Sequence record: MZ443771.1
Length of the DNA: 64,000 nucleotides
Reading direction: 5' to 3' (one strand)
The notes under the pieces were generated by a model, which saw only the letters and a list, made by a program, of their open reading frames with translations, made no database searches and was not told the origin of the DNA. Shown one piece after another: positions 35,197 to 53,051 of this stretch. Numbering within the stretch: the stretch's first letter is position 1; every line of letters starts with the position of its first letter. The translations under genes were made by a program, and so were the position numbers.

Positions 35197-36303
35197 TCAG
35201 TCCGCCTTAGTGAGTCCCAGATACTCAATCAGATTGCGTAGCTGGTCGTTATACCCACCTTCGATTAGCGCTCGTGCCATTGCAACGTGGTTCGAGTTCG
35301 CAGTGCGCACTACCTTAGCCTGATACTCAGGAACGTTCTGCATGTTCTGGCTCAGGTTGTAGAAGTAACTGCGCACGAAGTTGGTTCGCTCCACGTTACT
35401 CGCTTCCATATCGCTTGTGTCCTGTGTAGGAGTCAGCAGCAGATAGAGAGCAGCAAGCAGTTCAGGACTTTGGTCAACGACAGGCGAGGCAAGCGAAGCA
35501 GCAATCTTCGTCATACCTTTCGCAATGAAGTCAACCACAGTCTTCTCAATGTACGCTGTCCCCGCCTTGCCGACGTTCGGCAGATACAGATTAGGCAGGA
35601 TATAAATACAGAAGTACAGAGGGAAATCTTTACGCATCACATCGGGGATGAGCATCTCGGAGTAATCTTTCCAGATGTTCAGGTTGAAGTGCCACTCATC
35701 GTAAGGCACAGTGCGCATCAGGTTAGATACCGTCAGGTCGCGCACCAGATTCGCCTGCGATGCAAGATCGCGAGCGCTCTGAGAAGGGCCGAGAGTAGAA
35801 CTCGACACCAGTTGAACGTAGTTGCGAGTGACAGCACCCACAGTGTTATACACAACGTTCAACATCTCTACCCCGTTACCGTTAAGTCCGAAGATAACAG
35901 AACGAGGCAGGCCGATTGTGATGTACTCGTTATTATTGTCAACGCCCCACAAGCGCCAGTAACGCCCGCGACCAAGCTGAGTCATAGGCTGCGGGAGAAT
36001 ACGATTAGCGCGAGGTTTCAGGCAGAACGTGAAGCAGATACCGCTATCAATCATGATCACTGAATCATCAGGACGATTCGAGTAACCCATCGACATATCG
36101 TTATCCGTCGAGTACACGTTCACCAGAGTGAAGTTCAGAGACTTGGTGAAAGGCATCTGAGCTTCAATCAAATAGGCGAGGACTTGACGAACGATAGTAT
36201 CAAGCACATACGGACTAGCAGAACGCATTTGTTGCGGACGGTATTGCCCGCTGAATGTGTTCTCTTTGAATGTGCGATCTACCTTGAAGTGCGTCAACGC
36301 CAT
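35197..36303 (-). CDS. Putative virion structural protein
   Basis: 368 aa, coupled within the morphogenesis operon. Confidence 0.5.
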   Translation of the reverse strand: MALTHFKVDRTFKENTFSGQYRPQQMRSASPYVLDTIVRQVLAYLIEAQMPFTKSLNFTLVNVYSTDNDMSMGYSNRPDDSVIMIDSGICFTFCLKPRANRILPQPMTQLGRGRYWRLWGVDNNNEYITIGLPRSVIFGLNGNGVEMLNVVYNTVGAVTRNYVQLVSSSTLGPSQSARDLASQANLVRDLTVSNLMRTVPYDEWHFNLNIWKDYSEMLIPDVMRKDFPLYFCIYILPNLYLPNVGKAGTAYIEKTVVDFIAKGMTKIAASLASPVVDQSPELLAALYLLLTPTQDTSDMEASNVERTNFVRSYFYNLSQNMQNVPEYQAKVVRTANSNHVAMARALIEGGYNDQLRNLIEYLGLTKAD

Positions 36304-37592
36304 TACTTAACCGATTGCTTGAGCAGTCGTTTCTGCGCAGGGCTGAGACCCATGACTTCGGCAATGTCGTCGATTTTCTTCAACGTCAGTACGCCTTTCG
36401 CAGTGCCGCCGCTACCAGTCAGGGAGACCTTAACGAACTCACGTCCGCTACGACCATTGACCATCTGGTGAACGATGCTGTTCTTACCGCCGCGGCCAGC
36501 ACGAAGCGCAGTCGATGCCATGCCCAGGATTTCGGTAACAGCTTCTTTCTTCTCGGTAGGGCTGAGGCCCGGAGCAAGACGAACATACAGGCTGTCATTC
36601 TGGACACGCACGTTGTCGAAGATTTCTTTCTTACGACCGCGAATGGTGTGCTGTGCATTACCCAGCTGAGTGGTGTCACGCAGGTTCTGAGTAGAGCGGT
36701 TGATTGGCTTACGCTCACTGTAGTTCAGGAAGCCGTCGAGAGCCATCAGGTGGTTGATGGTACGCTTCATCTCAGGAGCAGTTTTAATCTGACGACCCAT
36801 AGGGAAGCTGCCCGGAACTTTCTCGTCAACGAGTGACGTCAGGAAGTTCTCACTGATACCGCTTGCCACTGCGATAGTGGTAGACAGCACCAGAGCATAG
36901 TTCGGGTAGTGCAGACCATCAGAGTTTACGAAGTTGTCGATAAACACATAGGTCTGGAAGCAGATAGGGTCGGTGCCTGACGCGATGAATGTACGAGTAC
37001 GAATCTTCGAATAGTCTTCTTTATTCAGAATCTTCGACAGGTAGTTAGCGATAGTCGCAGCCAGCTTGGTATGTTCTTTCGGAGCGCCGTTCTTAACGTC
37101 GATGCTCATCAGTTTAACCAATTTGGTCTGCTGGTCTTTCGCTTGCGTGATGACGTTCAGCAGGGACTTTGCAGCAGTGCTCTGATCTTTAAATGCGCTG
37201 AAAGTCTTGCTGCTAAGAATCTGATAGGCGACAGACAGTTCACCAATTGCTTGTGACAGTTGGCTAACCTGCTGGTTATACTGCGCCTTGTTCTTAACGT
37301 CAGTGATATCAATCTTCGACAGGTCGATTACCTGATTCAGGTCGATAGCTTTTGCCTGTTTGCCTTTGATTGAACCTTCAATATCAGACAGTTCAATCGC
37401 TTTGGCACTCATCGACAGGAGTTTTTTCGGGATGACGACAGACGTGGCTTGTGCGATAACTTTATCGAGTACGTTGCGGAACTCTTTCGCTGTACGCGCA
37501 CCGCGTAGGGCAGTCATGTTCCCAGAGCTATAGTCAACAGATGCGCTGATACTGCTAACTTCATTGTTTTTGGCAGTCTTAGCCATGATCAT
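36303..37592 (-). CDS. Putative virion/head protein
   Basis: 429 aa; behind CTAATTTT; N-terminal EVSSISAS. Confidence 0.5.
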   Translation of the reverse strand: MIMAKTAKNNEVSSISASVDYSSGNMTALRGARTAKEFRNVLDKVIAQATSVVIPKKLLSMSAKAIELSDIEGSIKGKQAKAIDLNQVIDLSKIDITDVKNKAQYNQQVSQLSQAIGELSVAYQILSSKTFSAFKDQSTAAKSLLNVITQAKDQQTKLVKLMSIDVKNGAPKEHTKLAATIANYLSKILNKEDYSKIRTRTFIASGTDPICFQTYVFIDNFVNSDGLHYPNYALVLSTTIAVASGISENFLTSLVDEKVPGSFPMGRQIKTAPEMKRTINHLMALDGFLNYSERKPINRSTQNLRDTTQLGNAQHTIRGRKKEIFDNVRVQNDSLYVRLAPGLSPTEKKEAVTEILGMASTALRAGRGGKNSIVHQMVNGRSGREFVKVSLTGSGGTAKGVLTLKKIDDIAEVMGLSPAQKRLLKQSVK

Positions 37593-37623: not shown

Positions 37624-37631
37624 AAAATTAG
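37624..37631 (-). promoter_or_regulatory. Putative late promoter motif (CTAATTTT)
   Basis: 32 nt upstream of 37592. Confidence 0.6.
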
Positions 37632-37698
37632 CGACTAAGGGCTGATTTGTCCGATATAGTGTTCGCATAGACTTTACAAATTTCAGGCGCATGAATGC

Positions 37699-39714: not shown

Positions 39715-41595
39715 TTACTTCATTGCCGCAAGACGTTTACGGCGCGCTTTGGCTTCTTCGCGCATGTAGACGACTTCCTCCTTTGCCTCAGCCAGAGCTA
39801 TCTCAAGCGCACGATTACAGATGGCTTCAATGACCTGCTCAGGAGTCTCAGTAGTTTCGATCAGAAGATTCCCACTACGCGACAGTACCTCAGCATCAGG
39901 ATAGAGTTCCTCTCGCGCCTGCCCCATACACAGTTCGTCATCAATGCGATAGATAAGCATGGAGAGTTCAGTCTTCTTGAACTTGTTCTCCTTGCGCTCA
40001 AACAGAGGACGTAACTTAGAATGGAAATCTCGGCGAGCATCAATCGCTACATACTTCCAGCCTGCAAATACTTTCTTCGCACACTCGTAGTAACGATCGT
40101 CCACACTGTTCTTGTTGCGCTCAAGACTCACAAGAGTTGCAGCAGGACAGAACGGTGACATGTTAGCGAGTGAGCCGATAGCAGGCGCAAGCACGTACTC
40201 AGCGCGGTAACTATCGCCAAGTTCGTATTCTTCATCGACATACTTGGTCTGCACATCACCTGTATTGATACGCGATGCGTTGTACCAGAATGCACTCTCA
40301 GGGTTGTTGGTGTATTTGACGAACGACCATATCTGAGACAGAGCAGCAGGGTACGACCAATTGTGAAGACTGTCTTCTCGGTTGCTGTAGAAGTCTACGT
40401 CACCCAGATTCGCATCAAGGAAGTTCTGACGTCTATCCCGCGGCAACTTGTCGATGAAGATAGCCATAGCTCTAGGTCTATTGGACATCTTCTCCCACAG
40501 CATGAGCGTAGTTGGATCGTCAACACCAAGCGTACCGAAGACGATATCAATGAAGTCACCGAACTCTCGATAGTGTTTGTACACCAACAGCTCGGTAGCG
40601 CTGCGCACATAGAACTTAGGCTGTCCCCACTTCTCACGCGCAAGCGCGACTGCAACGCTCGGATAGCGTTCGATATAACTCAGGGCAACGTCTTCCGCTT
40701 CTTTGTTCTTCGTAGCAGTCAGGCGTTTGATAAACGCGTTAACATCACCATGCAGCATCGGGCTTTCGAGGTCATAGTCGAACTCTTCCCAGCGACGATC
40801 TGGATAGAGCTTGCTACTCAGTTCATACATGCCCTTGCGTTCGGTAGTTGCGATAAACGGATTGATGTGTTCGTCAAGCCACTCTTGCAGCACATGGACG
40901 AAAGGCATCTTAGAGTCAGGATAGGCGAACTCTACCAGATACAGAGCATTCACTTTCTCAGACCCGACAAACTTATCAGCAGCTTTCACCTTTGCGCGTT
41001 CGAAGTAAGGCTTGGCGAGACAGCGACCGATAGGCTTGTTGATGTTCTTGTCAGCAGGGTCAATCAGGTACGCAATCAGAGTGCCACCAGCGATATCCTG
41101 TTTGACATACTTCTTGTTCGAACCTGTCTTCACGTTCATGCAACTTACCCATCCACGGTCAGTGGACATGCCCGCAATATCATACGGGTGCATCGAGATG
41201 CAGATGAGTTGGCGGTTGCGCGTAGCATTCACAATAGACTTGCGATTCGGATCAGAGTCGAACATCTTTTTCAGTTCGGCATTCTTCGAAAGCACACGGC
41301 CGATTTTAACAATACGACCATGAGTGTCTTTCGCAGTACCTGTCAGGTAATCGACAAGCACCATATCTTTTTCCATCAAGGCATCTACGATCTGAATTGG
41401 AGGCTTGACGTTCTGCGCAACGTTTTTGATCACGTTGTCGCTCTTTGCGTCGATGTAGATACGCATGGCCTTGTGGCCTTTCTTGCCGCTAATCTTTTCG
41501 AAAAGACTAAGCAACGTGGGATTTGGTTTCCATCCTTTTCTATATTTGCGATAGATAGAAGGAGGTAACGCAGAGAGACTTACTTGAATTTCCAT
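39715..41595 (-). CDS. MEIQVSLS-tagged hypothetical protein (candidate internal virion protein)
   Basis: 626 aa; contains CISMHPYDIAGMSTDRGWVSCMN; has its own CTAATTTT motif and terminator. Confidence 0.6.
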   Translation of the reverse strand: MEIQVSLSALPPSIYRKYRKGWKPNPTLLSLFEKISGKKGHKAMRIYIDAKSDNVIKNVAQNVKPPIQIVDALMEKDMVLVDYLTGTAKDTHGRIVKIGRVLSKNAELKKMFDSDPNRKSIVNATRNRQLICISMHPYDIAGMSTDRGWVSCMNVKTGSNKKYVKQDIAGGTLIAYLIDPADKNINKPIGRCLAKPYFERAKVKAADKFVGSEKVNALYLVEFAYPDSKMPFVHVLQEWLDEHINPFIATTERKGMYELSSKLYPDRRWEEFDYDLESPMLHGDVNAFIKRLTATKNKEAEDVALSYIERYPSVAVALAREKWGQPKFYVRSATELLVYKHYREFGDFIDIVFGTLGVDDPTTLMLWEKMSNRPRAMAIFIDKLPRDRRQNFLDANLGDVDFYSNREDSLHNWSYPAALSQIWSFVKYTNNPESAFWYNASRINTGDVQTKYVDEEYELGDSYRAEYVLAPAIGSLANMSPFCPAATLVSLERNKNSVDDRYYECAKKVFAGWKYVAIDARRDFHSKLRPLFERKENKFKKTELSMLIYRIDDELCMGQAREELYPDAEVLSRSGNLLIETTETPEQVIEAICNRALEIALAEAKEEVVYMREEAKARRKRLAAMK

Positions 41596-41624
41596 TAGCG
41601 TTTCTCAGTGTTCGAATGATGCAA

Positions 41625-41632
41625 AAAATTAG
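41625..41632 (-). promoter_or_regulatory. Putative late promoter motif (CTAATTTT)
   Basis: 30 nt upstream of 41595. Confidence 0.6.
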
Positions 41633-41654
41633 CGTAGAAATGACAAACGCCCCG

Positions 41655-42164
41655 TTAGGAGCGTCTATTGAATTTGAGCCAGTCATTCCACCAGTAGGCA
41701 ACAGGCTTGTTTTGTTTGAGTGCATAGTCGATGCAGTTCTGCGTACCTGAAGGAGCGCCACAACAAAGAGAGATCAATCTGTCAGTCTCATCGACCATGT
41801 AATGATTTCGTTTGTTCAACGCGAACCCTGCTTGACCATCCATGTGCTCCCAGTCTTCTTTCGAAGTGACTATGCGCACCTCATGACTTTTGTTGAGCAG
41901 ACCGTCAAGTTCAAACACGCTACTGATTGTCCATCTGGAATTGAACCCAGGATAAGGCAGACATGAAACAACTTTGTGGCCTAGGTCGATTGCAGCAGTC
42001 GCTACTGCCATATCGAAACCTAGAGCACACCCCACATAGATGATAGCATCGTCCTCTATCGCAAGGACTTTTCTACGAGCGAACGTATAGAGGCGGCGTT
42101 TCGCCTCAGGGCTAAAGCCTCCAAGATACTGAGGACGATGGCCAGTGAAGGATATCTTTTCCAT
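41655..42164 (-). CDS. YspA/SLOG-family (DUF1273) nucleotide-binding protein
   Basis: ISFTGHRP, GCALGFD, KRNHYMVD and SGTQNCIDYA. Confidence 0.85.
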   Translation of the reverse strand: MEKISFTGHRPQYLGGFSPEAKRRLYTFARRKVLAIEDDAIIYVGCALGFDMAVATAAIDLGHKVVSCLPYPGFNSRWTISSVFELDGLLNKSHEVRIVTSKEDWEHMDGQAGFALNKRNHYMVDETDRLISLCCGAPSGTQNCIDYALKQNKPVAYWWNDWLKFNRRS

Positions 42165-42170
42165 GTAGGG

Positions 42171-42179
42171 TATTTACAG
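42171..42179 (-). promoter_or_regulatory. Putative replication-class promoter motif (CTGTAAATA)
   Basis: Only 6 nt separate it from the ATG of the SLOG gene. Confidence 0.5.
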
Positions 42180-42204
42180 AAGCACTTCCCTGTGCGTGGT
42201 CTGC

Positions 42205-42570
42205 TTAGACGACTACTTCAAGCTGGTGGTCACCAGAGTTCCACACCATCTCACGGATATTGCGTGGCATGATGATACAACCGCTTGAGGCAGTGCCTGG
42301 GGCTTTGATGCTATCGCCGTGCATCTGGAACGCAGAGCGGCCGAACATCACATTGTCAGCAGCAGGTGTCAAGTCCATTGCGTATGGTCCTGTCTTAGCG
42401 CTGGTGCGTGGTGCGTTCAACGTATAGTGACCAACAGGCAGCGGGCCCATGCCAACAATTGCTTGTGACTCATGCTTGTTCTTGTGCTGGCCTTTACCTG
42501 CGTAGCCGGTAGCGACAACTTTACCTGCTGCGTTATACAGGCGACCTGTAGTTTGTTCATATTTCCACAT
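42205..42570 (-). CDS. DUF2778 / Tlde1-type L,D-transpeptidase-fold protein
   Basis: 121 aa from MWKYEQ (GGAG RBS); GYAG, GPLPVGHY and FQMHGD...ASSGCI carry the catalytic His/Cys. Confidence 0.8.
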   Translation of the reverse strand: MWKYEQTTGRLYNAAGKVVATGYAGKGQHKNKHESQAIVGMGPLPVGHYTLNAPRTSAKTGPYAMDLTPAADNVMFGRSAFQMHGDSIKAPGTASSGCIIMPRNIREMVWNSGDHQLEVVV

Positions 42571-42594
42571 AGGTACTCCAATATGTGTATAATG

Positions 42595-42626
42595 GAAAAA
42601 GGGCCTACACCTTTCGATGCAAGCCC
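42595..42626 (-). terminator. Intrinsic terminator
   Basis: GGGCTTGCA-loop-TGTAGGCCC followed by TTTTT. Confidence 0.65.
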
Positions 42627-42771
42627 CAGTATTAGACGATGATCGTCTTAACAACGTTACGGTTCTTCTTTGGGTCGAACCACACTTCTTCAATAATCTT
42701 GCCCATGCCAAAGTTTATCATCTGCACAGTGCGTCGGCTGACGAGTTGCAGACGTTTAGAATGGAACATGA

Positions 42772-43281
42772 TTACTCCTTAATCATTTTGACACGCGTGT
42801 GGTCGAAGATGCCAAACGTTGGTACGTCATGGTGTTCGCCCTCATTACCTTTGATCGAGTCATATCCCGCGAGACGCAGAATCTTACTGATCTCAGTGTA
42901 TTCATCCCACCACATATACACGCGCTTGTGCATACCTTCTGGGATTACTTTTGCCAACGTGTCTAATCGTTTGACAAGGGTCATCGCCTCATCTTTGCCC
43001 ACCAGCTTTAACTGAAAGGCTTCCATGATGAGTTGCTTCACTCGTCTATGAATCTCAGCGAACTTTACTTCCGTCCACAGAGAACGGAATTTCAGGCTGG
43101 CGTACCTGCCTGGGTCCGCATGAAATCGGTAGAGTCTCCCACCCTCTGCATACTTCTCAGCATACGCACGATCTGGAGTTACCCAAGTCATGTGTTGCTT
43201 CTTAGCATGATCGTCAGACCAATCTTCGGCCAGACCTCGATAGTAGATGATGGGAGAACTCAGACTGACAAAGATCTGCAA
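42772..43281 (-). CDS. MQIFVSLS-tagged ADP-ribosyltransferase-like protein
   Basis: YYRG, WVTPDRAYAEKYA, G.LY, LAGYDSI and FGIFD follow the pattern of phage ART-fold domains; TTG start. Confidence 0.55.
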   Translation of the reverse strand: MQIFVSLSSPIIYYRGLAEDWSDDHAKKQHMTWVTPDRAYAEKYAEGGRLYRFHADPGRYASLKFRSLWTEVKFAEIHRRVKQLIMEAFQLKLVGKDEAMTLVKRLDTLAKVIPEGMHKRVYMWWDEYTEISKILRLAGYDSIKGNEGEHHDVPTFGIFDHTRVKMIKE

Positions 43282-44361
43282 CTACTTGCCGCCTTTCATC
43301 CATGAGTTCTGGGCGGCCATACGATCGACCTTCTTGAACTTCTGGAGACGTTTGATAGATGCTTCCAAACCTTTACGCGCAGACTGCAAGCTGGAGCCAG
43401 GTACTGAACCGCCACCATTGCCTCCGAAGTTAGCGAAGCTATCCCACTTGCCTGTTTTAGGGTTCTTGCTCATACGATAGCTTGCAGTACCGAGTTTGTA
43501 CTCGATGCTGTTACCCTTGACGCGGAATTTGCCTTTGTCAACACCGCCTTTCTCAATAAGGCTCTTAACGATGTTGGAGATATCTTTCGAAGCTGGGGCA
43601 TGATCGTGAGCGTCAATAGACACTTTAGTGCCCGGCACACGACTGGTGGTATAGCTGTCCAGAGGAACCTTGCCTGCCATAGGCCTTTCTTTATCTGAAT
43701 TGCCTTTCAGCATATCATCCAGACTTTTGGAGCCAGCTTTCTTTGTAGGCGTCTTCGTAGCTTTGGTATCTGCTGCGCGCTTCTTGGTCGTAGTGGCAGC
43801 CTTGCCTGTCTTTTTATCGCCTTTAGCACCAATCTCACTGAACTTGTCTTCGCGCATAAACTTAGGCTTGAACATACCGCGCTTACCAGTGACACCAAAC
43901 TCAGTCAGCTTGATCGCACGAACAGCCTTCAATGCTTTGGCAAGACCCGGGCCTGACAGTACAAGGTCAGATGCAGACAGCGGCAGATTCAAACCGCCCA
44001 GGTGATGTTTCTTAGCGTGGGCGTTTGCTTCTTTGATAAGAGCTTTCGCCTGCTTAATGTCAGCAGAAGATTTTGCTTTTTCTGTTTTGTAGGTTTCACG
44101 CAGAGCAGTCTTACGTGGGCCTTTAGGTGTTTGGCCAGCTTTGGTGAAAGCAGTAGCTGCTTTAATGCGAGCAGACATACCGCTAATAGCGGCAGTCTTG
44201 GCTTTCTTCAAAAGGCCAACAACAGCCTGCAGTTCAGGCTTTGACCCGGTCGCTACAACCAAAGTAGAAGCACCGCCGACTTTGGCCATTTTGTATGCAG
44301 GTTTCTTTGCCGCAGACTCAGACAGTAGATTGTCTGCGATATTGATTTTAATTAGTGCCAT
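43282..44361 (-). CDS. Basic Lys/Ala-rich hypothetical protein (candidate internal head/DNA-binding protein)
   Basis: Start MALIKINI at 44361 with GAGG RBS; N-terminal LLSESAA. Confidence 0.55.
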   Translation of the reverse strand: MALIKINIADNLLSESAAKKPAYKMAKVGGASTLVVATGSKPELQAVVGLLKKAKTAAISGMSARIKAATAFTKAGQTPKGPRKTALRETYKTEKAKSSADIKQAKALIKEANAHAKKHHLGGLNLPLSASDLVLSGPGLAKALKAVRAIKLTEFGVTGKRGMFKPKFMREDKFSEIGAKGDKKTGKAATTTKKRAADTKATKTPTKKAGSKSLDDMLKGNSDKERPMAGKVPLDSYTTSRVPGTKVSIDAHDHAPASKDISNIVKSLIEKGGVDKGKFRVKGNSIEYKLGTASYRMSKNPKTGKWDSFANFGGNGGGSVPGSSLQSARKGLEASIKRLQKFKKVDRMAAQNSWMKGGK

Positions 44362-44372
44362 TTTTGAGTTCC

Positions 44373-44978
44373 TCAAATCAAGGCGTGACCCGGTAGGTCG
44401 AAGTTTTTACCTGCGGCATAATCACCAAGTGCCTGATACAGCGAGTTACGCAGCATCTGACCAATGATATCCGAGTTGTGTGCTGACGCGTCTTTGAAAG
44501 CAACCTCGATCGCATCAGTGCGTGGGTTGACTACGGCGTAACGCAGAGGACAAATCGTCTGCACTTTGCACCAAGTGTCCACACGATCTTGTAGTTCAGG
44601 CGTCATCTGAATTTTGAAGTCAGACAACTGAAACACAAGGCTCTGAATAGGTGGAGGTGCGGATAAGGAGATGAACTTACCGTTAGCGTTCAGTCTCTCC
44701 ATGGCCATAGCCGCGTCGTAGATCGACTGATAGCCTTCACTGACAGTAGTGAGGCCACTCAGTTTAAAGCTATGCGTTGTCAATCCTTTGCGAATCAACT
44801 TGGCGATTTTGAGTTCGTAATCACCAGAATCATCCCGCATGAAAGTGACGAACGCGTAGAAGGCGAAGCCATCATCTTCACGTAAAAGTCTGTGATCTAA
44901 TACGCGAAAGCCCACGACACTTTGCAGTGCCTGGGCTGTGATTTGCATCGCCTTAGAAAGGGAAACGTAAATTTCCAT
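44373..44978 (-). CDS. MEIYVSLS-tagged hypothetical protein
   Basis: 201 aa, coupled to the upstream stop. Confidence 0.65.
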   Translation of the reverse strand: MEIYVSLSKAMQITAQALQSVVGFRVLDHRLLREDDGFAFYAFVTFMRDDSGDYELKIAKLIRKGLTTHSFKLSGLTTVSEGYQSIYDAAMAMERLNANGKFISLSAPPPIQSLVFQLSDFKIQMTPELQDRVDTWCKVQTICPLRYAVVNPRTDAIEVAFKDASAHNSDIIGQMLRNSLYQALGDYAAGKNFDLPGHALI

Positions 44979-45313
44979 TAACGCAGACGGGCGAGAGCCT
45001 TTTTAGCTTCTGCCAGAGAAGGCTGAATATCACCTTCATCGTCGAACTCACCTTCGTAGCGCAGGTCGATACCGGTGACGTTGAAGCCTTCGTCTTCGTC
45101 TTTGGTGATGATGCCGAAGCGAGCAGTGTCACCGTTAACGCTGATAAAGCGCATGTCGAGAATGTCGTTTGGACCGCTCAAGTCAGACGGCATACCGTCG
45201 TCGATGATTGCGAACAGTGCTTTCTTGTCCAGACCCTTAAAGAAAGCAGCCAGTGCAGGCGCAGCAGATTGGGATTTAACAGCATCGTTCAGTTTCAGTT
45301 TGATCAAAGACAT
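44978..45313 (-). CDS. Hypothetical protein
   Basis: 111 aa; N-terminus MSLIKLKL...KSQSAA resembles that of 43282..44361. Confidence 0.6.
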   Translation of the reverse strand: MSLIKLKLNDAVKSQSAAPALAAFFKGLDKKALFAIIDDGMPSDLSGPNDILDMRFISVNGDTARFGIITKDEDEGFNVTGIDLRYEGEFDDEGDIQPSLAEAKKALARLR

Positions 45314-45315
45314 GG

Positions 45316-45888
45316 TCAGTTTACTCCAACTTGTTTAGTGATTGTGATAACACGCTGGTACCAACCATAAATGTTATCTTCCTGAGTTTCGTCTGCCTTA
45401 GCGATGTTCTTCAACTTCGCAATACGACAGCCATTATAGGCATAAGCCAGAACTTTAATATCACGCACTTTGCAGTACGCAGCAAGAGCAGCGAGCGTCT
45501 TCGGACCGACGTTTGCAGCAGGTGCAAAGTCAGGGTAGAGCCTACCGCGACCGTTGAGAATATTCAACTGGTCTTGCAGTTCAGCGATTGCTGCTGGTGG
45601 CCCTGAGTTAACGGCGTAGTCAAACACCCACAGTGCCAGCTCCTGAGAAAACTTGGCGATCTCATCGCACTTGCAGAAGTCCCAGAAGTTCTTGCTGTAG
45701 ATAGCGTAAGCGATCTCATACGGCAAGTTTTGCATATCGCCAGTGTAACCGTAAGCGCGAGCATTCTTTTGAGTAACGCCCCAACGAGTCGGACCACCAC
45801 GGTCTGCTGATCGATTCGTATAGGTAGAGCCGCCCTCACGGTCAATCACTTCGGCAATAGCGTTCTTACGAAACGTTAATGCGTCCAT
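45316..45888 (-). CDS. Glycoside hydrolase family 108 endolysin with C-terminal PG-binding region
   Basis: REGG..Y.N...DRGGPTRWGVT signature; DYAVNSG; G.VGPKTLAAL. Confidence 0.9.
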   Translation of the reverse strand: MDALTFRKNAIAEVIDREGGSTYTNRSADRGGPTRWGVTQKNARAYGYTGDMQNLPYEIAYAIYSKNFWDFCKCDEIAKFSQELALWVFDYAVNSGPPAAIAELQDQLNILNGRGRLYPDFAPAANVGPKTLAALAAYCKVRDIKVLAYAYNGCRIAKLKNIAKADETQEDNIYGWYQRVITITKQVGVN

Positions 45889-45913
45889 AATAGATTCCTC
45901 TTTTAGACGAACT

Positions 45914-45921
45914 AAAATTAG
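45914..45921 (-). promoter_or_regulatory. Putative late promoter motif (CTAATTTT)
   Basis: 26 nt upstream of the endolysin. Confidence 0.6.
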
Positions 45922-45923
45922 CG

Positions 45924-46799
45924 TTAAACGGTTAACTTTTTATACTTAAAGCTGATCTTAGGTTGAGTGCCCGGATCAGCAGAGACAGGAACAAAATCAT
46001 CACTAGACAGACTGATAAATGCCTTTAGTGCAGCGTGATAGCAAAATGCCTTGTCGAGAATAACTGATTCGTCTGCGAGATCTGCCTGACGTTGATACAT
46101 GCGAGCATCAGTAGTCGATGCAGCGGAGAGCGCAGGCGTACCGTAACCGCTGTTAGCCACAACACCAGCACTGACAGCAGCTTGCAGCAGTTTAAACTCG
46201 GTAGATATTGAGGCACTTGTAGGTATCGCTATGGTTTTATCACAGGCCGAAACGTTCGTGGTAATCGAAGCAGTGTATGTAAACTGATTACCCTGATCGT
46301 GAACATAACGAAAACCTATATTGACTGTACCAGACTGACCGTAAGGACAGTTAGTACCTGCAAGCTGCACAGGAGGAAGGACAACTGTTGGGTCAGTCAA
46401 GTCTGCCATGCTCTTAACGCCGTACGTCAGGAACAGGGTTGTGTTGATACCGACACCCATACCATAACTTTGTTCTTCGGCGAATGTAGTTAGGCCAGAG
46501 ATAGTCCCAGCACCTGAGTATGACACGATATCAGTCGTTGCTTCAATGAGAGCAGATCTAAGTCGTGTGTACTTTAGAGGGCAGAAGTAATAGCGCCCAG
46601 CTTTGCGTCCACGAACAGTATTACAAAAGCCATTAAATCCTAAAACGCTACGAGCACGTTTCGCCAAGAGATTGGCATCTGTAAGGTTGGTTGCAGATAC
46701 GGTTGGTTCTTCTCGACTGTCAAACAAGAATACATTTGGGTGGGCATCAGTCGGTCCTGATAGTCCAGAAAAAGATGATATGTACTGCATGGTTTCCAC
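45924..46799 (-). CDS. Putative virion protein
   Basis: 291 aa, Ser/Thr/Ala-rich, behind ATAATTTT at 46838-46845. Confidence 0.45.
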   Translation of the reverse strand: METMQYISSFSGLSGPTDAHPNVFLFDSREEPTVSATNLTDANLLAKRARSVLGFNGFCNTVRGRKAGRYYFCPLKYTRLRSALIEATTDIVSYSGAGTISGLTTFAEEQSYGMGVGINTTLFLTYGVKSMADLTDPTVVLPPVQLAGTNCPYGQSGTVNIGFRYVHDQGNQFTYTASITTNVSACDKTIAIPTSASISTEFKLLQAAVSAGVVANSGYGTPALSAASTTDARMYQRQADLADESVILDKAFCYHAALKAFISLSSDDFVPVSADPGTQPKISFKYKKLTV

Positions 46800-46858
46800 C
46801 TCAGAGTATTGAGTAAAGGTGCTACGTACTTGACATAAAAATTATCTGTAGAAACGAC

Positions 46859-46878
46859 AAAAGGGGCCGAAGCCCCTT
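46859..46878 (-). terminator. Intrinsic terminator
   Basis: AAGGGGC-TTCG-GCCCCTT followed by TT. Confidence 0.8.
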
Positions 46879-47224
46879 AGAATGTCCAACGTGTCAACCA
46901 AACGATCACTACAGGCCAGATGCCTATATGAGCCAAATAAGCAAAGCGCATCAGCTTACCTTTGATGTACTTACCGATAACGATCTCATTCAATGCTCCG
47001 TACACGCCAGCAAAAGCAGAGAACAACAGAACGAGAAATGCAATCTGGTCTGTACTCATTTCAAAGATGCGATAGCCTGCTACGACGAATACCACACAGG
47101 AGAAACCGAGAGTCCCGTAGATAGACGATGAGGAAGCGTTCGGCTTGAACACGATATCATACAGGCCAAAGCTCAACAGAATCGACAGCAGCATTAACGC
47201 TTGGTAATCGGCTGACATGCGCAC
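46877..47224 (-). CDS. Small integral membrane protein
   Basis: 115 aa with about four hydrophobic segments. Confidence 0.65.
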   Translation of the reverse strand: MRMSADYQALMLLSILLSFGLYDIVFKPNASSSSIYGTLGFSCVVFVVAGYRIFEMSTDQIAFLVLLFSAFAGVYGALNEIVIGKYIKGKLMRFAYLAHIGIWPVVIVWLTRWTF

Positions 47225-47511
47225 TCCACATCTTCTACACTGATAGGTTTCTTGCGGCGCATATCAAGTGCGAGTTGTGCCTTACGTCCGATACGTGCCA
47301 TAGACTCAAGGTCTTCGTCAGAGTAACCGCTCATGCTTTCTGTGACGATAGCCATCTTTGTCATCTGGCTAGGAGTCAGATCGTACTGGTCGATGCCGTC
47401 AACAAGACCAACACCGAACCCTGCAATCTTGTTCCAGACGTCAGGCACGTTGTCATCGACTTTAACCATCAACGTTCCGTGACGCGCTACATCGTGAATA
47501 TTACGAGTCAT
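47194..47511 (-). CDS. Hypothetical protein
   Basis: Likely start MTRNIH at 47511 with AGGAG RBS. Confidence 0.6.
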   Translation of the reverse strand: MTRNIHDVARHGTLMVKVDDNVPDVWNKIAGFGVGLVDGIDQYDLTPSQMTKMAIVTESMSGYSDEDLESMARIGRKAQLALDMRRKKPISVEDVECACQPITKR

Positions 47512-47512
47512 A

Positions 47513-48232
47513 CTAAACTCCCTGATTGGCGAGATAAGTATCGGTGATGTTCGAGGTCTTCTCAACGTTACCGCGAATATAACCAATTTCGAATACCTGA
47601 ACGTTGTGTTTGACAACAGCTTCACCCACTGTCTCACACGTACCGTTATTCAGATCGATGAATGCCTGACACAGACGATCTGCTACAGGCTTGGCTAAGA
47701 TCTTCATCAGCGTATGCTTCTGCACTGCGGACAGTTTGATTGGCAGTGCGTCAATCTCACGCTCGATGTTCTTCTTACCGCCATCATAAATCCAACGACA
47801 GATGGTTGCAGTCAAAGGCTTCTGGTGAGTCTTCGACGGCAACGTATAGATGTAGGTCATCAGTCGATAGAACAGGCTGCCGTCAATCGCACGACGTTTG
47901 AGATCGTCCAGATACTTGCCAACAGGTTGCAGCTTGGCTTTCTGTGGAACCATCTCGTCGAGTTTGAGATCAACGTCTAGGCCGTAGCGCTTCAACGTTT
48001 CACTGTGACCAAACACGTAGACAATATGATCAGGCATGTCACGAATCGCAACAGCGTTACGCGAATACTCACGCGAGCCAACAACGAAAATGTACTTACG
48101 ATATTTCTTCGAAGGATCAAGCGTACCACCAGCAGGAACAAACGTCACGCGGTCAGCATGTCCTTTCTTTTTAAGCCAGCCCATGACTTGCTCTGGGCTT
48201 TGGCGTGTTACAGCGATTACAGGCATTGTCAC
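47513..48232 (-). CDS. Hypothetical protein
   Basis: 239 aa in the sbcC operon. Confidence 0.65.
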   Translation of the reverse strand: MTMPVIAVTRQSPEQVMGWLKKKGHADRVTFVPAGGTLDPSKKYRKYIFVVGSREYSRNAVAIRDMPDHIVYVFGHSETLKRYGLDVDLKLDEMVPQKAKLQPVGKYLDDLKRRAIDGSLFYRLMTYIYTLPSKTHQKPLTATICRWIYDGGKKNIEREIDALPIKLSAVQKHTLMKILAKPVADRLCQAFIDLNNGTCETVGEAVVKHNVQVFEIGYIRGNVEKTSNITDTYLANQGV

Positions 48233-48552
48233 TCCACCGTATCGAGAAGTTGTGCTGTGAACTCACGCAGGCGCGCTTCGAGAAACTTACCAGTCTCTGG
48301 ATGACAGATGAGCTGGTCGTTTTTCAGATAGACACGATTCGACGGTCTAAGCACTTTGCGCTTTTTAGGATTCATGCGCAGCGCTTGATGCACCGGTGTT
48401 GCGTAGAAGTCTTCTTCGACTTCATCCATGCAGTTCACATTGAACACCACTTCGTACTTCGCAAACAAATGCAGGTTACGCGTGATAGTGCCCATGTCTA
48501 TTGGTACGCTGTGCTTCTCATGATCGCGATTAAGCTGTCCGAAGATCATCAC
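48229..48552 (-). CDS. Hypothetical protein
   Basis: 107 aa, overlaps the sbcC stop. Confidence 0.6.
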   Translation of the reverse strand: MMIFGQLNRDHEKHSVPIDMGTITRNLHLFAKYEVVFNVNCMDEVEEDFYATPVHQALRMNPKKRKVLRPSNRVYLKNDQLICHPETGKFLEARLREFTAQLLDTVE

Positions 48553-50879
48553 ATCACCTTACGTGTTAATACGGACGTGCCGTTCTTCTTGGTCACTGTC
48601 CATTGATTATCTGAGAAGTGCTCGACACCGTTAGGCGTTATCCAGTAAACGTTCGGGATAATCTGCTTGAGTATCGGCAGGAAGTTATTGACGATGTGCT
48701 CACTTACTGCTGGGCTGCAACTGTTATCAGGTTCGTCCAGAACGATGAAGTTAGTACGACGACCAGCTGGGATGAACGGCATGATCGCAACAGCAAACAA
48801 CAGGCGGAAGCAGTTAGTCTCTGCACCACTCATGATTGCAATGTCTGTGGTCTTCTTAGAAGTCACACGCGTAACAGTCGCACCAACACCCTGCTTGGTA
48901 GTAAACAGTTGGAAGCGCATAGGCTCAGGGAACACAAGGCCGCTGTACTCATTCAGCTTCGCTTCAATCTGCTGCAATCGACCTTCAACTGCTTTCAGCT
49001 TGAGTGCGTTGTTGCTGTATGCTTTGTACAGGACTTCGAATACCTTACGCTTATCAATCATCGGCTGGAGCTTGGCCAACTTGGTACGCAGTTCACGCAG
49101 CGTTTCCTCGTAGTGCTCATGCTCCTGAATACGCATCTGAATGCCCTGAGCTTTGCGATCTTTCTTCTCGATATCCGTGATGAGCTTGTTGAGTTCCTTC
49201 TCAATCTTTTTGTATCGACCATCGAGAACGTAGAACGGGTCTTCAGGTTCGCCTACAGCTTTCAGCGCAGAGGTCAGGTCTTTCAGAATCTCAAGATCCT
49301 TGATACGGTTCTTGATCGTCTTACGAGCTTTCTTCGGCTGCTTAACCGCTTTAGGTTTCTTGAGAGCGTCACGCTTCGCCACCAGCTTCTCATACTTCTT
49401 CGCTGCTTCGAATTGTTCTTCCATCGTATCGAGTTTCTTCCCGATAGACTTCAACTGCTTCTCAAGTTCTTTGCGGTCATGCTTAGGCTTCTTCACCTTG
49501 TTGTCTTTCAACGCGGTGAGTTCTGCATTCAGTTTGTGGTAGTCAATCGCTTCGATACACTCATCAATGATTGCCTGAGCTTTCGTTGCAGCGCGTGACA
49601 TAGCTTTCAAGTCAACGTCTTGTCCGCAGGTAGGGCAAGAGTTACCGTCATGGTCGTGCTCCTCAAACGCACGATACGCCTGAACTATCGCTTTGGATTC
49701 TGCTCGGGCATCTTGTGCCTCTTCCTGAGTTCGTTTAGGAGCTTTGAGCTTAGACAGCTTTTTACTGAGCTTGTCAACTGCTTCTCGCCAGTCGTCGTAT
49801 TCTTCTTGTTGCTCATCAACTTTCTCCAACAGCTCCTGCAGGCTCTCTTCTTCCTTGACCAAAGCGCTGTGCTTCTTACGCAGCTTTTTGTTGTCGAGGT
49901 CGGCAACATCGCCGAGAGCTTTGATTTTCTTTTTGACCGATGCAAGTTCTGCTTCGTATTCTTCGAGGTCAGACACGTACTCATCGTAACGGTCAAACTC
50001 CACCAGCATACCACGAAGGTTATTCAGTTCACCTTTCGGATCGTCAGACTCAATGCCGAGCGTATCGAGCTGGTGCTTGAGCTTTTCGTACTTACGCGCA
50101 GACGAACGAGCAGAGCCGAGATCAATCAACTCTTCACCTAAACGGTTACGGCGTTTCTTCAACTTGTCCGACTGTTCGATGATGGCTGCAAGCGTATTCT
50201 TTTCCTGAGCGTGAATGTCCAGCGCGTTCTGTTTACGCTGCGTCACGTCAAGCATATCAGCCAAGCCTTTAGATTCTGTCTCTGCTTCTTTCGCAAGGTC
50301 CAGTTTCTTTTTCAGCGCGATACGGATGTTATCGAACACATCAAGGCCGAATAGGTTTGTCAGATACTTGAGTCGATCAGCAGGTGACGAACGCTGGAAC
50401 GGATGTTCAATCTGCGACTGAATGTAGCAGTAGCTATAGAACTCCTCACGCGTTAATGGCCAGTGCTTAGTCACCCAAGAACGTGCAACGTCCTGACGAT
50501 CTACTTTCTGGTCTTCACCGTTGTAGTAAACTTTGTACTTGGTCTTCGTCTGCACGATGCGAACGATGCCACCAAGAGGTGAGTGCCACGACAGGTCAAT
50601 CGAGCTATCCTTGCCGAGCATGTTACCCTTGTCTTTCTTTTTCAGAGCAAGCGGGTCTGCTTCATACAGCAATGTTGGGATAGCACCGAACAGGAGGCTT
50701 TTGCCTACACCATTCGTGTTGTCTTTGACGTTTGGACTATCGAGGTTCTTACCACAAATAGTTGCGAAGCCTTCACTGTCCAGTGTGTCGATATCAAGCT
50801 CTTTGTACACGCCAACATCGCGGAGATGAATCTCTTTCAGGCCGATGCCGTGGTTATGTTTCTGCTTCGCTTTGCCCAT
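48549..50879 (-). CDS. sbcC: SbcC/Rad50/gp46-type ABC ATPase
   Basis: Walker A NGVGKS, long coiled coil with CPTCG zinc hook, signature MSGAE, Walker B VLDEP. Confidence 0.92.
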   Translation of the reverse strand: MGKAKQKHNHGIGLKEIHLRDVGVYKELDIDTLDSEGFATICGKNLDSPNVKDNTNGVGKSLLFGAIPTLLYEADPLALKKKDKGNMLGKDSSIDLSWHSPLGGIVRIVQTKTKYKVYYNGEDQKVDRQDVARSWVTKHWPLTREEFYSYCYIQSQIEHPFQRSSPADRLKYLTNLFGLDVFDNIRIALKKKLDLAKEAETESKGLADMLDVTQRKQNALDIHAQEKNTLAAIIEQSDKLKKRRNRLGEELIDLGSARSSARKYEKLKHQLDTLGIESDDPKGELNNLRGMLVEFDRYDEYVSDLEEYEAELASVKKKIKALGDVADLDNKKLRKKHSALVKEEESLQELLEKVDEQQEEYDDWREAVDKLSKKLSKLKAPKRTQEEAQDARAESKAIVQAYRAFEEHDHDGNSCPTCGQDVDLKAMSRAATKAQAIIDECIEAIDYHKLNAELTALKDNKVKKPKHDRKELEKQLKSIGKKLDTMEEQFEAAKKYEKLVAKRDALKKPKAVKQPKKARKTIKNRIKDLEILKDLTSALKAVGEPEDPFYVLDGRYKKIEKELNKLITDIEKKDRKAQGIQMRIQEHEHYEETLRELRTKLAKLQPMIDKRKVFEVLYKAYSNNALKLKAVEGRLQQIEAKLNEYSGLVFPEPMRFQLFTTKQGVGATVTRVTSKKTTDIAIMSGAETNCFRLLFAVAIMPFIPAGRRTNFIVLDEPDNSCSPAVSEHIVNNFLPILKQIIPNVYWITPNGVEHFSDNQWTVTKKNGTSVLTRKVM

Positions 50880-51067
50880 TAGATGTACTCGCAGGTCTGT
50901 TCTTGAATCAGGCCTTTACCGTGAGTCTGTTCGAACACTTCGATCTCATCATCGGTATAAGGCTCACCTGCTTCTGCGATAACGTCATACGAAATTGATT
51001 CGTCACGCGTATCTGACACAACAGGTTTGATGAGTCGCCACAGAGGTAATGCAGTTTTAGTAGTCAT
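50879..51067 (-). CDS. Hypothetical protein
   Basis: 62 aa, coupled. Confidence 0.55.
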   Translation of the reverse strand: MTTKTALPLWRLIKPVVSDTRDESISYDVIAEAGEPYTDDEIEVFEQTHGKGLIQEQTCEYI

Positions 51068-51276
51068 TAGTGAAATACCTTCTGGCGTTCAACCCAAAGA
51101 TCAGCAGCACGATACACCTTACGCAGTTCTTCCAGCTTTGCTTCTGGAACAGGTGTTGGTGAAGAGAAGATGCACTGCGGTGTCTTCTCCTCTTTGCCTG
51201 TTACTGGATTGATATCGGTATCGTGACGCATTACGTTCCAGCACCCGTTAGTGCGGATATTGATAGTCTGTTCCAC
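51067..51276 (-). CDS. Hypothetical protein
   Basis: 69 aa, coupled. Confidence 0.55.
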   Translation of the reverse strand: MEQTINIRTNGCWNVMRHDTDINPVTGKEEKTPQCIFSSPTPVPEAKLEELRKVYRAADLWVERQKVFH

Positions 51277-51312
51277 TGCAATGTACCTATATTTGGTCTA
51301 AATGATATATGC

Positions 51313-51321
51313 TATTTACAG
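51313..51321 (-). promoter_or_regulatory. Putative replication-class promoter motif (CTGTAAATA)
   Basis: Heads the operon containing sbcC. Confidence 0.6.
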
Positions 51322-51355
51322 TTTTAAGGTGTATAGACGAAAAGAAGGGCCACCC

Positions 51356-51874
51356 TTAGGCAGCCCCTTCGTACACTTTGCGTTTGCCACCGTCCATGTA
51401 GTGGTCTGCATAGAACGGACCGCTAACACCTTTGAGGCCTAGTTTATTTTTAAGGGTATTCTTACGCGCGAACACATACTTCAAATGCTCGTTGCGTTTT
51501 CTTCTGCGCTCTGGCGACCAACCCTTCATCTCGTTTTCAATCTTACGCACTGAGGCATCGAGAGAAACGAGGTTCTGATAATCGTTGGTTGCTTTGCTGC
51601 ACGATGAGAATACCTTACGCACACCGTTGTCGAGATAGTGGTCTTCGTAGAAAGGACCGCTAACATCGTCTAAGCCTATTCGACGTCTAAGCTGACGGTG
51701 AAGACGCTTCGGCCACACCAGCTCGTCATCAATCAGGTGGATTACTGCGGGCATTGCTTCGCGCTGATCGTTAAGCAAAGAATTGATCTTCGCGTCGATG
51801 CGACACAACTCTTTGTAGTCGTCATGAGGCGAAGGACATTGCGCTTTGGATAAATCGACAGTGAGTTCCATCAA
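51356..51874 (-). CDS. Hypothetical protein with an internal duplication
   Basis: IGLDDVSGPFYEDHYLDNGVRKVF and LGLKGVSGPFYADHYMDGGKRKVY. Confidence 0.65.
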   Translation of the reverse strand: MMELTVDLSKAQCPSPHDDYKELCRIDAKINSLLNDQREAMPAVIHLIDDELVWPKRLHRQLRRRIGLDDVSGPFYEDHYLDNGVRKVFSSCSKATNDYQNLVSLDASVRKIENEMKGWSPERRRKRNEHLKYVFARKNTLKNKLGLKGVSGPFYADHYMDGGKRKVYEGAA

Positions 51875-52317
51875 TACCTCCGAGGCTTTTTAGGCTTCTT
51901 GATAGCTGACTTAGGTCGCTTGATACGTTGCAGTGCCTTACGCGCTTCGACAATCTGCTTGGCGACAGTAGCACGACGCTCTTTGATTTGCGCAGTGTCC
52001 TGTTCAGTACCTTTCAGTTTATCAAGACGGTTCCACTCTTTGACCAAGCGATCAACTACAGCAGCACGGGAAACGCGTTGCTGATTGACACGCACAATGT
52101 CCTGCTGGGTCTTAACTGAGTTGCGCGTAGCATTGACTTCATCACGCGCTGACGTTACGCCTTTGGTATCGCCCTCAGATTGCTTGTCGTTAAGTTTCTT
52201 ACGAGCAACAGCAGCACGGCGTTGTGCTCCCTTGAGATCGTCTTTCGAGTTCTCTAAGGAAACTTTTGTGTCTTCAAGTGGGCTGGTGCGCACACTCAAA
52301 CTAACTTGAATTTCCAT
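51871..52317 (-). CDS. MEIQVSLS-tagged basic coiled-coil protein
   Basis: 148 aa from the ATG at 52317 (GGAG RBS); ORF-track start is upstream of a terminator. Confidence 0.65.
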   Translation of the reverse strand: MEIQVSLSVRTSPLEDTKVSLENSKDDLKGAQRRAAVARKKLNDKQSEGDTKGVTSARDEVNATRNSVKTQQDIVRVNQQRVSRAAVVDRLVKEWNRLDKLKGTEQDTAQIKERRATVAKQIVEARKALQRIKRPKSAIKKPKKPRRY

Positions 52318-52333
52318 GACGGCTCCAGAAATG

Positions 52334-52360
52334 AAAAAGGGCAGCCGAAGCCACCCTTTT
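52334..52360 (-). terminator. Intrinsic terminator (GGGTGGC-TTCG-GCTGCCC)
   Basis: Stem-loop plus T-run. Confidence 0.8.
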
Positions 52361-52447
52361 GTAGATGGCGCGCTATGCACCCGACTGTTAAGTCTACTAC
52401 GATTATTTTACCTCGCAGTAGTGGGCGAGGAGATTAGGATCACCTCC

Positions 52448-52984
52448 TCATGCTGATTGAAGATCGAGAAGTTCCTCGTCTTCGATATCAGCGGCAGACC
52501 ACGAACGAAGCACGGAAGCATTGCCGCGATTGCCTGTCAACATCATTTTGATTGACGGCTTAGCATCGCGCTCTGCATAGTGATCGATAAGAGCTTTCTC
52601 TGTACCGAACCACAGAATGGAGTGACCACCTTTAGGGCAGATTAAGAACTGCGCCGGACGCTGAGGTACGTTCAACGTCATGTAGAAATCGCCGGCACCT
52701 GTAGGGCCCATCATAGGCATAGGCTTCATGACAGCCATGAAGTCGTTAGCATCTTTCAGACGCTTATCGCCGAGCAACCACAGTGCGCCTTCTTCACCTT
52801 CACGCACGGCAGACAATGTGCCTTTGCGAGTAGTGATAGATCCGAATGTGTCTTGATCGAAGCGGGCCAGACCAAAGATAAGTGATGCAAGTTTCTTCAG
52901 GTCAGGGGTCGTGCATGGGCTGTCAATTTTCGCCATGCCCTCAGACCCAAGTGTAATCTTCGAGAGTGAAACAAAGATTTCCAT
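52448..52984 (-). CDS. MEIFVSLS-tagged hypothetical protein
   Basis: 178 aa, behind CTAATTTT at 53020-53027. Confidence 0.65.
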   Translation of the reverse strand: MEIFVSLSKITLGSEGMAKIDSPCTTPDLKKLASLIFGLARFDQDTFGSITTRKGTLSAVREGEEGALWLLGDKRLKDANDFMAVMKPMPMMGPTGAGDFYMTLNVPQRPAQFLICPKGGHSILWFGTEKALIDHYAERDAKPSIKMMLTGNRGNASVLRSWSAADIEDEELLDLQSA

Positions 52985-53051
52985 TGTTTGTCTTCCAGCG
53001 CTATTGTGAATTGTAGTCTAAAATTAGCGTCCCATCAGACATTTCTGAAAT

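Follow-up and report, generated by a model that had tools for sequence, protein, structure and literature searches.

A short N-terminal leader on unrelated proteins of Erwinia phage pEa_SNUABM_20: a probable cleavable prohead-targeting propeptide

Why should a set of phage proteins with nothing else in common begin with almost the same eight amino acids? The question is raised by a 64,000-nucleotide stretch of DNA (hereafter the window) that matches the Alexandravirus Erwinia phage pEa_SNUABM_20 (MZ443771.1; genome of 265,871 bp) at 100% identity, in which a leader of the form M-[EQ]-[IL]-x-V-[SD]-L-S, variants included, opens seven genes. An initial annotation, made from the letters of the window, had proposed that five of these proteins carry an undescribed Ser-based sorting or cleavage signal, which loads them into the head for injection with the DNA. 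We added the rest of the genome to the window (genome position = window position + 124,000), scanned every N-terminus, and compared the leader with those of related phages. The leader is probably a cleavable prohead-targeting propeptide, cut by the head-maturation protease of the phage. We infer cleavage, the protease responsible, targeting by the leader itself and injection of the cargo; the capsid-loading reading is supported by five independent comparative lines which converge, namely the portability of the leader, the motif that it shares with head proteins, its exchange for a Glu-ending leader, the presence of homologous cargo in virions, and its disorder in structural models.

The five open reading frames first listed (starts 41595, 43281, 44978, 52317 and 52984) all begin as described, as does the variant start at 62309. 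The list was incomplete, lacking one gene in the window (start 51871) and three elsewhere (genome 91777, 194822 and 199102), and with these the leader opens at least ten genes in the genome (Table 1). The RefSeq annotation of the 98%-identical phage pEa_SNUABM_3 gives identical start positions for the leader genes. In a proteome of about 83,800 residues, the pattern [ILM]x[VIL][SD]LS stands at residue 2-3 in ten proteins and at an internal position only twice; approximately 0.02 N-terminal occurrences are expected by chance.

The tagged proteins range from 109 to 626 residues in length. That they are otherwise dissimilar was borne out: all-against-all BLASTP found no similarity past the first 8-10 residues, and searches of Pfam, PHROGs and NCBIfam gave no shared family or common domain, the Nudix hydrolase being the only one that could be named. 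One might suppose that they are diverged paralogues of a single family, of which only the N-terminal strand is still recognizable, or that the likeness is due to chance. Some tagged genes are indeed paralogous (A-family pairs in the JA phages and in Lu11, and a Lu11 gp212-like trio). We nevertheless give this explanation next to no weight, considering the spread of lengths, the lack of pairwise similarity, the occurrence of the leader on a Nudix hydrolase, a novel 270-residue domain and a different alpha/beta fold, its disorder in both structural models, and the ratio of observed to expected occurrences given above.

The codons of the leader vary. Serine is encoded by AGT, TCC, TCA, TCT, TCG and AGC, which upholds the switching between AGT and TCN codons noted at the outset, leucine by CTC, CTG, CTT, TTG and TTA, and valine by GTA, GTC and GTT. 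This bears on a second alternative, an mRNA element such as an initiation enhancer or downstream box. The sequence ATG GAA AT is common to several of the leader genes, and AT-rich codons 2 and 3 favor initiation. Such an element is highly improbable, since it does not account for the variation of the Ser, Leu and Val codons, for orthologues of cargo B (itself with a TTG start) that begin with ATG, GTG or TTG and still retain the leader, for other lineages that keep the physicochemical pattern with wholly different codons (Ala for Ser), or for internal copies of the motif in scaffold-like proteins. The leader is under selection as a peptide, and it is portable and lineage-specific.

Portability is evident in the related phages too. 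A single-sequence search of viral contigs recovered close relatives only and an alignment-based search was required; the alignment-based scan of IMG/VR with the family of cargo A yielded 74 loci, in each of which candidate N-termini were clustered. Many of these loci contain 3-10 neighboring genes under one lineage-specific leader, and the tagged proteins within a locus are mostly unrelated. The leader of Alexandravirus is M[EQ]IxVSLS; that of the Dickeya JA phages, on seven genes, is M[EQ][ILV]x[VIL]S[LI]S; that of Lu11, on nine genes, is MKIQLAVA, with five consecutive genes beginning [MV][KR]IQLA[VT]A; and HRDY3-like contigs carry MEMxLALA on up to ten genes. Neighboring genes of HRDY3 begin MEMTLALA, MELQLALA, MNFELAVA, MELMLALA and MEVLISLA. 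Further lineages have MKVNIALA, M[RK]IQIA[LI]A or M[KQR]IQLS[LMI]S, and MKIQISLS and MKIKVFVSES occur near head modules. The general form is M-x-hydrophobic-x-hydrophobic-small-hydrophobic-small.

The expectation that orthologues keep the leader is confirmed by phage Y3, which retains it through substitutions. Its protein MKILISLS↓ARTSPLEDTK (here and below the arrow marks the predicted cut) shares the mature sequence of cargo D of the window, MEIQVSLS↓VRTSPLEDTK; its orthologue of cargo C starts MKIFVSLA in place of MEIYVSLS, and that of cargo E starts MEIFVSLS. The cargo set of Y3 differs, there being no homologue of cargo A at that position and one extra gene with a long leader. At locus L116 (IMG/VR 3300017792_000001), three genes near the head module begin MARIRIYLDG, MTAIRIYLDG and MARISMYLDP; these starts resemble the window variant MARIKISLS and may constitute a further leader class.

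The same motif recurs in head proteins. The head module of pEa_SNUABM_20, encoded on the minus strand in a part of the genome not covered by the window, includes an HK97-like major capsid protein. A small-x-small motif stands in the capsid protein directly before the conserved (D/E)RRE core. In lineages with leaders ending in Ser this site reads HSVS↓S (this phage), TSVS↓A (Yoloswag), VSES↓H (JA) and QSVS↓S (locus L117, where the leaders are MKIQISLS); with leaders ending in Ala (A-x-A, SLA in one) it reads VATA↓S (Lu11), MATA↓S, MAIA↓S, IAVA↓N and IATA↓A. A cut at this point would remove 68 of the 365 residues of the capsid protein of this phage, or 19%, which fits the published mass loss of approximately 20% for the PaBG capsid protein on maturation. 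From the motifs in the head proteins we infer protease cleavage after hydrophobic-[SA]-x-[SA], the leader being a propeptide of eight residues with this site at its end. Another candidate in the capsid protein, (E)LALS↓S at residues 29-33, was rejected; it falls in a conserved A-L-[SD]-x-x-TGE block which reads ALD in several lineages, and the site before (D/E)RRE is the better fit.

Close to the capsid gene, gene 00143 specifies a hyper-acidic protein of 679 residues with D/E-rich repeats ending FDSESS. Judged by position and motif content, it resembles a scaffold or core protein, apparently one that is processed into fragments, and the name "ATPase" is therefore probably wrong. In lineages with Ala leaders, the scaffold-like protein contains 11-13 hydrophobic-A-x-A motifs against approximately 1.5 expected, a number reached by none of 500 composition-preserving shuffles, and sites such as LVAVA↓S, LIAVA↓T, QLAVA↓A and VVATA↓S are built like the ends of the leaders. 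The Alexandravirus protein has mixed Ser/Ala sites, among them VFNSLS↓T, SLVSLS↓R, IVDSLS↓R and TVALS↓K. The motif at the leader end, in the capsid protein precursor and in the scaffold-like protein switches between Ser and Ala in step across lineages. The initial proposal of an N-terminal sorting or cleavage signal resembling that of T4 is, to this extent, supported by the comparison; its Ser-based rule must give way to small-x-small, with Ser or Ala according to the lineage.

The head-maturation protease of the module is gene 00145. A zinc-ribbon-like insert of the form C-x-x-C...C-x-H (CSICG...C-x-HT) is conserved in it, and the protein of this phage could process itself at an N-proximal IRSES motif.

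Cargo A presents the leader in exchange. After the leader it has a conserved N-domain of about 270 residues (S-x-HPYD-x-x-GMST-x-R-x-W-x-x-C), which is also found in Lu11, HRDY3, RsoM2USA, Atu_ph07 and huge metagenomic phages. In the alignment of the family the conserved domain begins A-[LV]-x-[PL]-S, and the 7-17 residues ahead of it have one of two endings. One is small-x-small, as in ...VSLS↓A, ...LAVA↓A, MINISTS↓A and MKLLISLS↓A. The other is hydrophobic-x-Glu, as in MQYTDLIE↓A (Atu_ph07), MKTFKQFLNTLME↓A (RsoM2USA), MRIQELVE↓A, MKVKELLE↓A, MKIYELLE↓A and MRIFEIINE↓A, and in some loci, such as L081, Glu-ending leaders are also present on several unrelated neighbors. Both of the Glu-type phages that were checked, Atu_ph07 and RsoM2USA, possess T4-type prohead protease and capsid genes. 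Since T4-family prohead proteases cut after Glu in a short motif (PMC9026906), the Glu-type leader fits cleavage by the gp21 family. Contigs with both an A locus and a detectable 00145-type protease belong without exception (11 of 11) to small-x-small lineages. Leaders are exchanged on one cargo family when the head machinery differs. Our judgment is evenly divided on the wider proposal that, in jumbo phages, address label and head protease come as interchangeable pairs, the Glu leader going with T4-type heads and the small-x-small leader, in the Lu11, PaBG and Alexandravirus phages, with a protease of new specificity.

Homologues of the cargo have been found in virions. RsoM2USA ORF132, an A homologue of 76.6 kDa, is among ten abundant virion bands identified with LC-MS/MS (PMC8504454). 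Atu_ph07 CDS394 (gp394), which we assigned as the A homologue by its length and neighbors, is represented in the virion proteome by 18 peptides, with 41% coverage (PMC6102473 supplement). PaBG gp202, a homologue of the 1948-residue protein of the window, starts MGSLFTLNSLS↓A and is virion band 1, the largest band, in a published proteome that lists only 14 bands. A helicase or translocase of this size, if packaged, would merit attention on its own.

Genes of the A family often occur as two or three tandem paralogues (loci L038, L085, L026 and L063), with a shared N-domain and differing C-terminal parts of about 340-920 residues. This arrangement suggests that the shared N-domain serves for delivery or anchoring, and that the parts fused to it are effector modules which vary.

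AlphaFold2 models were examined for two of the cargo proteins. The model of cargo B has a pLDDT (predicted local distance difference test) score of 83.4, with residues 6-17 below 50, and that of the cargo A N-domain a score of 82.7, with residues 1-7 below 50. From the low scores at the leader residues the leader is modeled as a flexible extension, disordered and outside the fold of both proteins. Neither cargo A nor cargo B had a significant match in the PDB by sequence-profile search or Foldseek; the weak top Foldseek matches of cargo A were GNAT-like, and those of cargo B were to RES, ParT and tankyrase, which have the ADP-ribosyltransferase fold (E above 0.3). Residues R14, T34/D36 and E146 are invariant in the B family. 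The tagged protein Lu11 gp211 matches PF18760 (ART-PolyVal) with E=1.6e-4 and 22.9 bits, under the 31.2-bit cut-off, and is matched by the B-family hidden Markov model with E=0.057. Cargo B possibly has an ADP-ribosyltransferase-like fold, a tentative assignment. A suspected relationship of cargo B to the "YRG" proteins of locus L056 was not confirmed.

Head proteases, for instance those of T4, HK97 and phiKZ, act inside proheads, so that a site for such a protease, if conserved at the very N-terminus of many proteins, implies that these are enclosed in the prohead. The mechanism that we propose is as follows. The leader, as an amphipathic strand with hydrophobic residues at positions 3, 5 and 7 and small residues at 6 and 8, would bind a component of the prohead core, with the head-maturation protease and the hyper-acidic scaffold-like protein as the two candidates. 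The cargo would be enclosed while the shell forms, protease 00145 would cut after hydrophobic-small-x-small, i.e. after Ser8, and the mature cargo, freed inside the head, would leave with the DNA at infection.

The two functions in this scheme might be separable. The leader could be purely a head-protease site, for example one that keeps an enzyme inactive until it is in the head, with recruitment left to other parts of the protein. The capsid and scaffold motifs share just the last four or five leader residues, and the packaging signal of P1 DarB exceeds nine residues, the Dar proteins lacking a consensus (PMC9024508). We consider this version unlikely, however: each lineage also conserves residues 2-5 (E-I-x-V, K-I-Q-L, E-M-x-L), to an extent not shared by the internal sites, the cargo proteins have no other common recruiting element, and in T4 the first 10 residues do both jobs.

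Several points weigh against the prohead-targeting propeptide. The tagged genes sit among replication and recombination genes and not in the head module, and one cargo is a Nudix hydrolase. Literature searches yielded no usable virion proteomics for Alexandravirus, Y3, AD1 or Lu11; the GenBank record of Y3 carries no structural notes on these genes in a stretch of 32 kb, and the tagged genes of Lu11 are not annotated as structural. The enrichment of sites in the Alexandravirus scaffold-like protein is modest, five mixed Ser/Ala sites against 1.5 expected, a value reached by 9 of 500 shuffles. Searches with protease 00145 against Pfam, NCBIfam and the PDB returned no sequence match and no relative of known specificity. 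The link between leader and protease comes from a pattern-based search of limited sensitivity, which detected the 00145 type in 11 of 17 large small-x-small contigs and in none of the eight Glu-type contigs. Finally, the Ser/Ala co-variation tracks phylogeny, and may therefore represent only two or three independent events.

Some of these points would suit a leader with a role outside the capsid, recognized by some other factor of phage or host, as a substrate of another protease (the window peptidase at 56670-57644, for which searches gave no informative match, or the KMPT-N metallopeptidase-like protein), as a chaperone signal, or as a degradation signal timing early or middle effectors. In its favor are the location of the tagged genes among those for replication and recombination, the two further peptidase-like genes in the genome, and the lack of direct virion evidence for this lineage. 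It would, however, leave unexplained the motif in the capsid precursor and scaffold-like protein and its switching in step, the exchange with Glu-ending leaders in phages with a T4-type protease, and the homologous cargo in virions, and we regard it as decidedly unlikely. An import signal of nucleus-forming phages (chimalliviruses) was an early candidate. It was dropped on grounds of phylogeny: Alexandravirus falls in the Lu11/PaBG/Dickeya/Erwinia jumbo-phage group, or "Lupandier group" (PMC7412058), and in published trees this group stands separate from the phiKZ-like jumbo phages. The propeptide reading thus remains the one that we prefer.

Leaders of other lengths accompany the octapeptide. 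The weaker N-proximal S-x-S-A copies first reported at 24177, 30622, 37592, 44361 and 45313 are all present. Those at 45313 and 44361 belong to leaders of a second and longer type, M-x-LIK[LI]-x-[LI]...S-x-S↓A, and the likeness of the two genes is confined to the first 18 residues; Alexandra, SNUABM_2 and Y3 have two or three genes each with M-x-LIK[LI]-x-L...S-x-S leaders. Short small-x-small leaders are found on the 1948-residue helicase-like protein, whose Y3 orthologue starts MINISTS↓A, on the products of the genes at 24177 and 37592, and on that of gene 00151 of the genome (MILSVS↓A). The Y3 orthologue of the 429-residue protein has VSSIS↓T. The 1511-residue product of gene 00113 (genome 79866-84401, minus strand) has, about midway along its length, one of the two internal copies of the full motif (LNVSLS↓T), at which it may be processed. 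Within cargo F a segment is duplicated, as GLDDVSGPFYEDHYLDNGVRKVF and GLKGVSGPFYADHYMDGGKRKVY.

Upstream of several of these genes lies a promoter-like motif, CTAATTT. Its main form, GCTAATTT, is located approximately 30-40 nt upstream of the tail sheath and endolysin genes and of the genes starting at 41595, 52984 and 37592. The initial annotation held that this motif heads the leader units as well as the sheath and endolysin; this is true for 41595, 52984 and the endolysin operon, but the 7-mer is not over-represented genome-wide, being seen 21 times where about 32 are expected. The arrangement of these motifs is consistent with co-expression of the leader genes with structural genes; the motif says nothing about timing. 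Between the leader-bearing genes of the endolysin-led operon are two untagged genes, for a Tlde1/DUF2778-domain protein (L,D-transpeptidase-like, Pfam E=3.9e-15; start MWKYEQTTG) and a SLOG/YpsA-like protein.

Table 1. Leader-bearing genes, head-module genes and upstream motifs of pEa_SNUABM_20 (window positions unless marked as genome; the arrow marks the predicted cut)
Feature	Position	Strand	Description
Cargo gene A	39715..41595	-	626 aa; MEIQVSLS, codons 1-8 (41572-41595)
Cargo gene B	42772..43281	-	169 aa; MQIFVSLS; TTG start directly after TAG stop
Cargo gene C	44373..44978	-	201 aa; MEIYVSLS; start overlaps upstream stop (TAATG)
Cargo gene D	51871..52317	-	148 aa, Lys/Arg-rich; MEIQVSLS; phrog_28362
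Cargo gene E	52448..52984	-	178 aa; MEIFVSLS; phrog_31786
Cargo gene F	51356..51871	-	171 aa; MELTVDLS
Gene G	61650..62309	-	219 aa; nine-residue variant MARIKISLS; phrog_31583
Nudix hydrolase	genome 91777	-	MMIKVSLS
Leader gene outside window	genome 194822	+	MEIYVSLS
Leader gene outside window	genome 199102	+	MEMLVSLS
Major capsid protein, gene 00141		-	365 aa, HK97-like; phrog_2522
Virion structural protein, gene 00142		-	
Hyper-acidic protein, gene 00143	genome 108769-110808 (L004:10769-12808)	-	679 aa; annotated "ATPase" via phrog_20988
KMPT-N metallopeptidase-like protein, gene 00144		-	
Head-maturation protease, gene 00145	genome 112031-112810	-	phrog_18299; JA11 annotation
Long-leader gene	44978..45313	-	111 aa; MSLIKLKLNDAVKSQS↓A
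Long-leader gene	43282..44361	-	359 aa; MALIKINIADNLLSES↓A
Helicase-like protein	24776..30622	-	1948 aa; MMNQVISTS↓A, short small-x-small leader
340-aa protein	23155..24177	-	N-proximal VVSIS↓A, residues 11-16
429-aa protein	36303..37592	-	Adjoins head-tail connector gene; N-proximal VSSIS↓A; phrog_36434
GCTAATTT motif	41626..41633	-	About 30 nt upstream of gene A
GCTAATTT motif	45915-45922		Before endolysin operon holding four leader-bearing genes
GCTAATTT motif	53021-53028		Before gene E
GCTAATTT motif	37625-37632		Before gene at 37592
GCTAATTT motif			Before tail sheath gene at genome 105295
Untagged Tlde1/DUF2778 gene	42205-42570	-	
Untagged SLOG/YpsA-like gene	41655-42164	-	

Head-borne proteins are the first line of a phage against host defenses, and outside the T4 and phiKZ group they have been found only via proteomics. 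If our reading is correct, the packaged and probably injected proteome could be read from any genome or metagenomic contig of these phages by the leader alone. The set in this phage would comprise at least ten proteins with the short leader and about six with longer or shorter small-x-small leaders, including a Nudix hydrolase, a possible ADP-ribosyltransferase, the 1948-residue helicase-like protein and the widespread 270-residue domain. The head protease would cut after small-x-small and in this depart from the Glu rule that holds for T4 and phiKZ, and the leader would provide a minimal tag of eight residues for loading foreign or reporter proteins into these capsids.

Literature searches led to the P1 DarB signal, to the capsid-targeting sequence (CTS) of T4 and to the long propeptides known from phiKZ and SPN3US. 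They gave no account of the present leader, nor of any head protease in this phage group with small-x-small specificity, and to that extent the signal may still be called undescribed. The leader end recalls the A-x-A sites of type I signal peptidase, which have small residues at P3 and P1. A Sec signal has a positively charged n-region, a hydrophobic h-region of 10-15 residues and an A-x-A c-region. The leader is unlike it in that only eight residues precede small-x-small, there is no h-region, and the same motif occurs inside the scaffold-like and capsid proteins. Staphylococcus phage 80alpha, with its Prp-cleaved L27-like leaders on capsid and scaffold proteins, likewise combines a short common leader with a dedicated protease; that leader is unrelated in sequence and is cut by a host cysteine protease in Firmicutes.

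In phages phiKZ, 201phi2-1 and SPN3US, as is proposed here, the head protease acts at a short motif on many internal and ejection proteins, whose propeptides contain several such sites redundantly. These propeptides differ in being mostly longer than 100 residues, in lacking a common short leader, and in being cut after Glu (S/A/G-x-E); in SPN3US only gp53 and gp54 have an identical N-terminus. P1 DarB is kin by role, its N-terminal signal being sufficient to send a reporter into the capsid (PMC9024508). The DarB signal is longer than nine and at most 30 residues, with no consensus among the Dar proteins, whereas here a strict consensus is present on at least ten proteins.

The closest parallel is the T4 CTS of IPI, IPII, IPIII and Alt, a propeptide of 10-19 residues that has its targeting function in the N-terminal residues and its processing signal in the last ones (PMC9026906), and which is removed by gp21. 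Both it and the present leader (8-18 residues) are short N-terminal extensions of otherwise unrelated proteins, both stay constant while the cargo set varies between related phages, and both end in accordance with the cleavage motif of the capsid and scaffold proteins, which in the present case is a predicted one. The gp21 motif is absent from the leader end, which is S-L-S or A-x-A with Glu only at residue 2; unlike the hydrophobic-x-Glu of the T4 CTS, the leader is strand-like, alternating hydrophobic and small residues, with the predicted cut after Ser or Ala. Again unlike T4, the phage has an HK97-like capsid protein and a head protease without a sequence match to gp21. What survives of the gp21-like link initially drawn is thus the analogy with the T4 propeptide, protease 00145 not being detectably gp21-like by sequence. 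By this comparison the leader would resemble the T4 CTS in its working, and depart from it in sequence and in cleavage motif.

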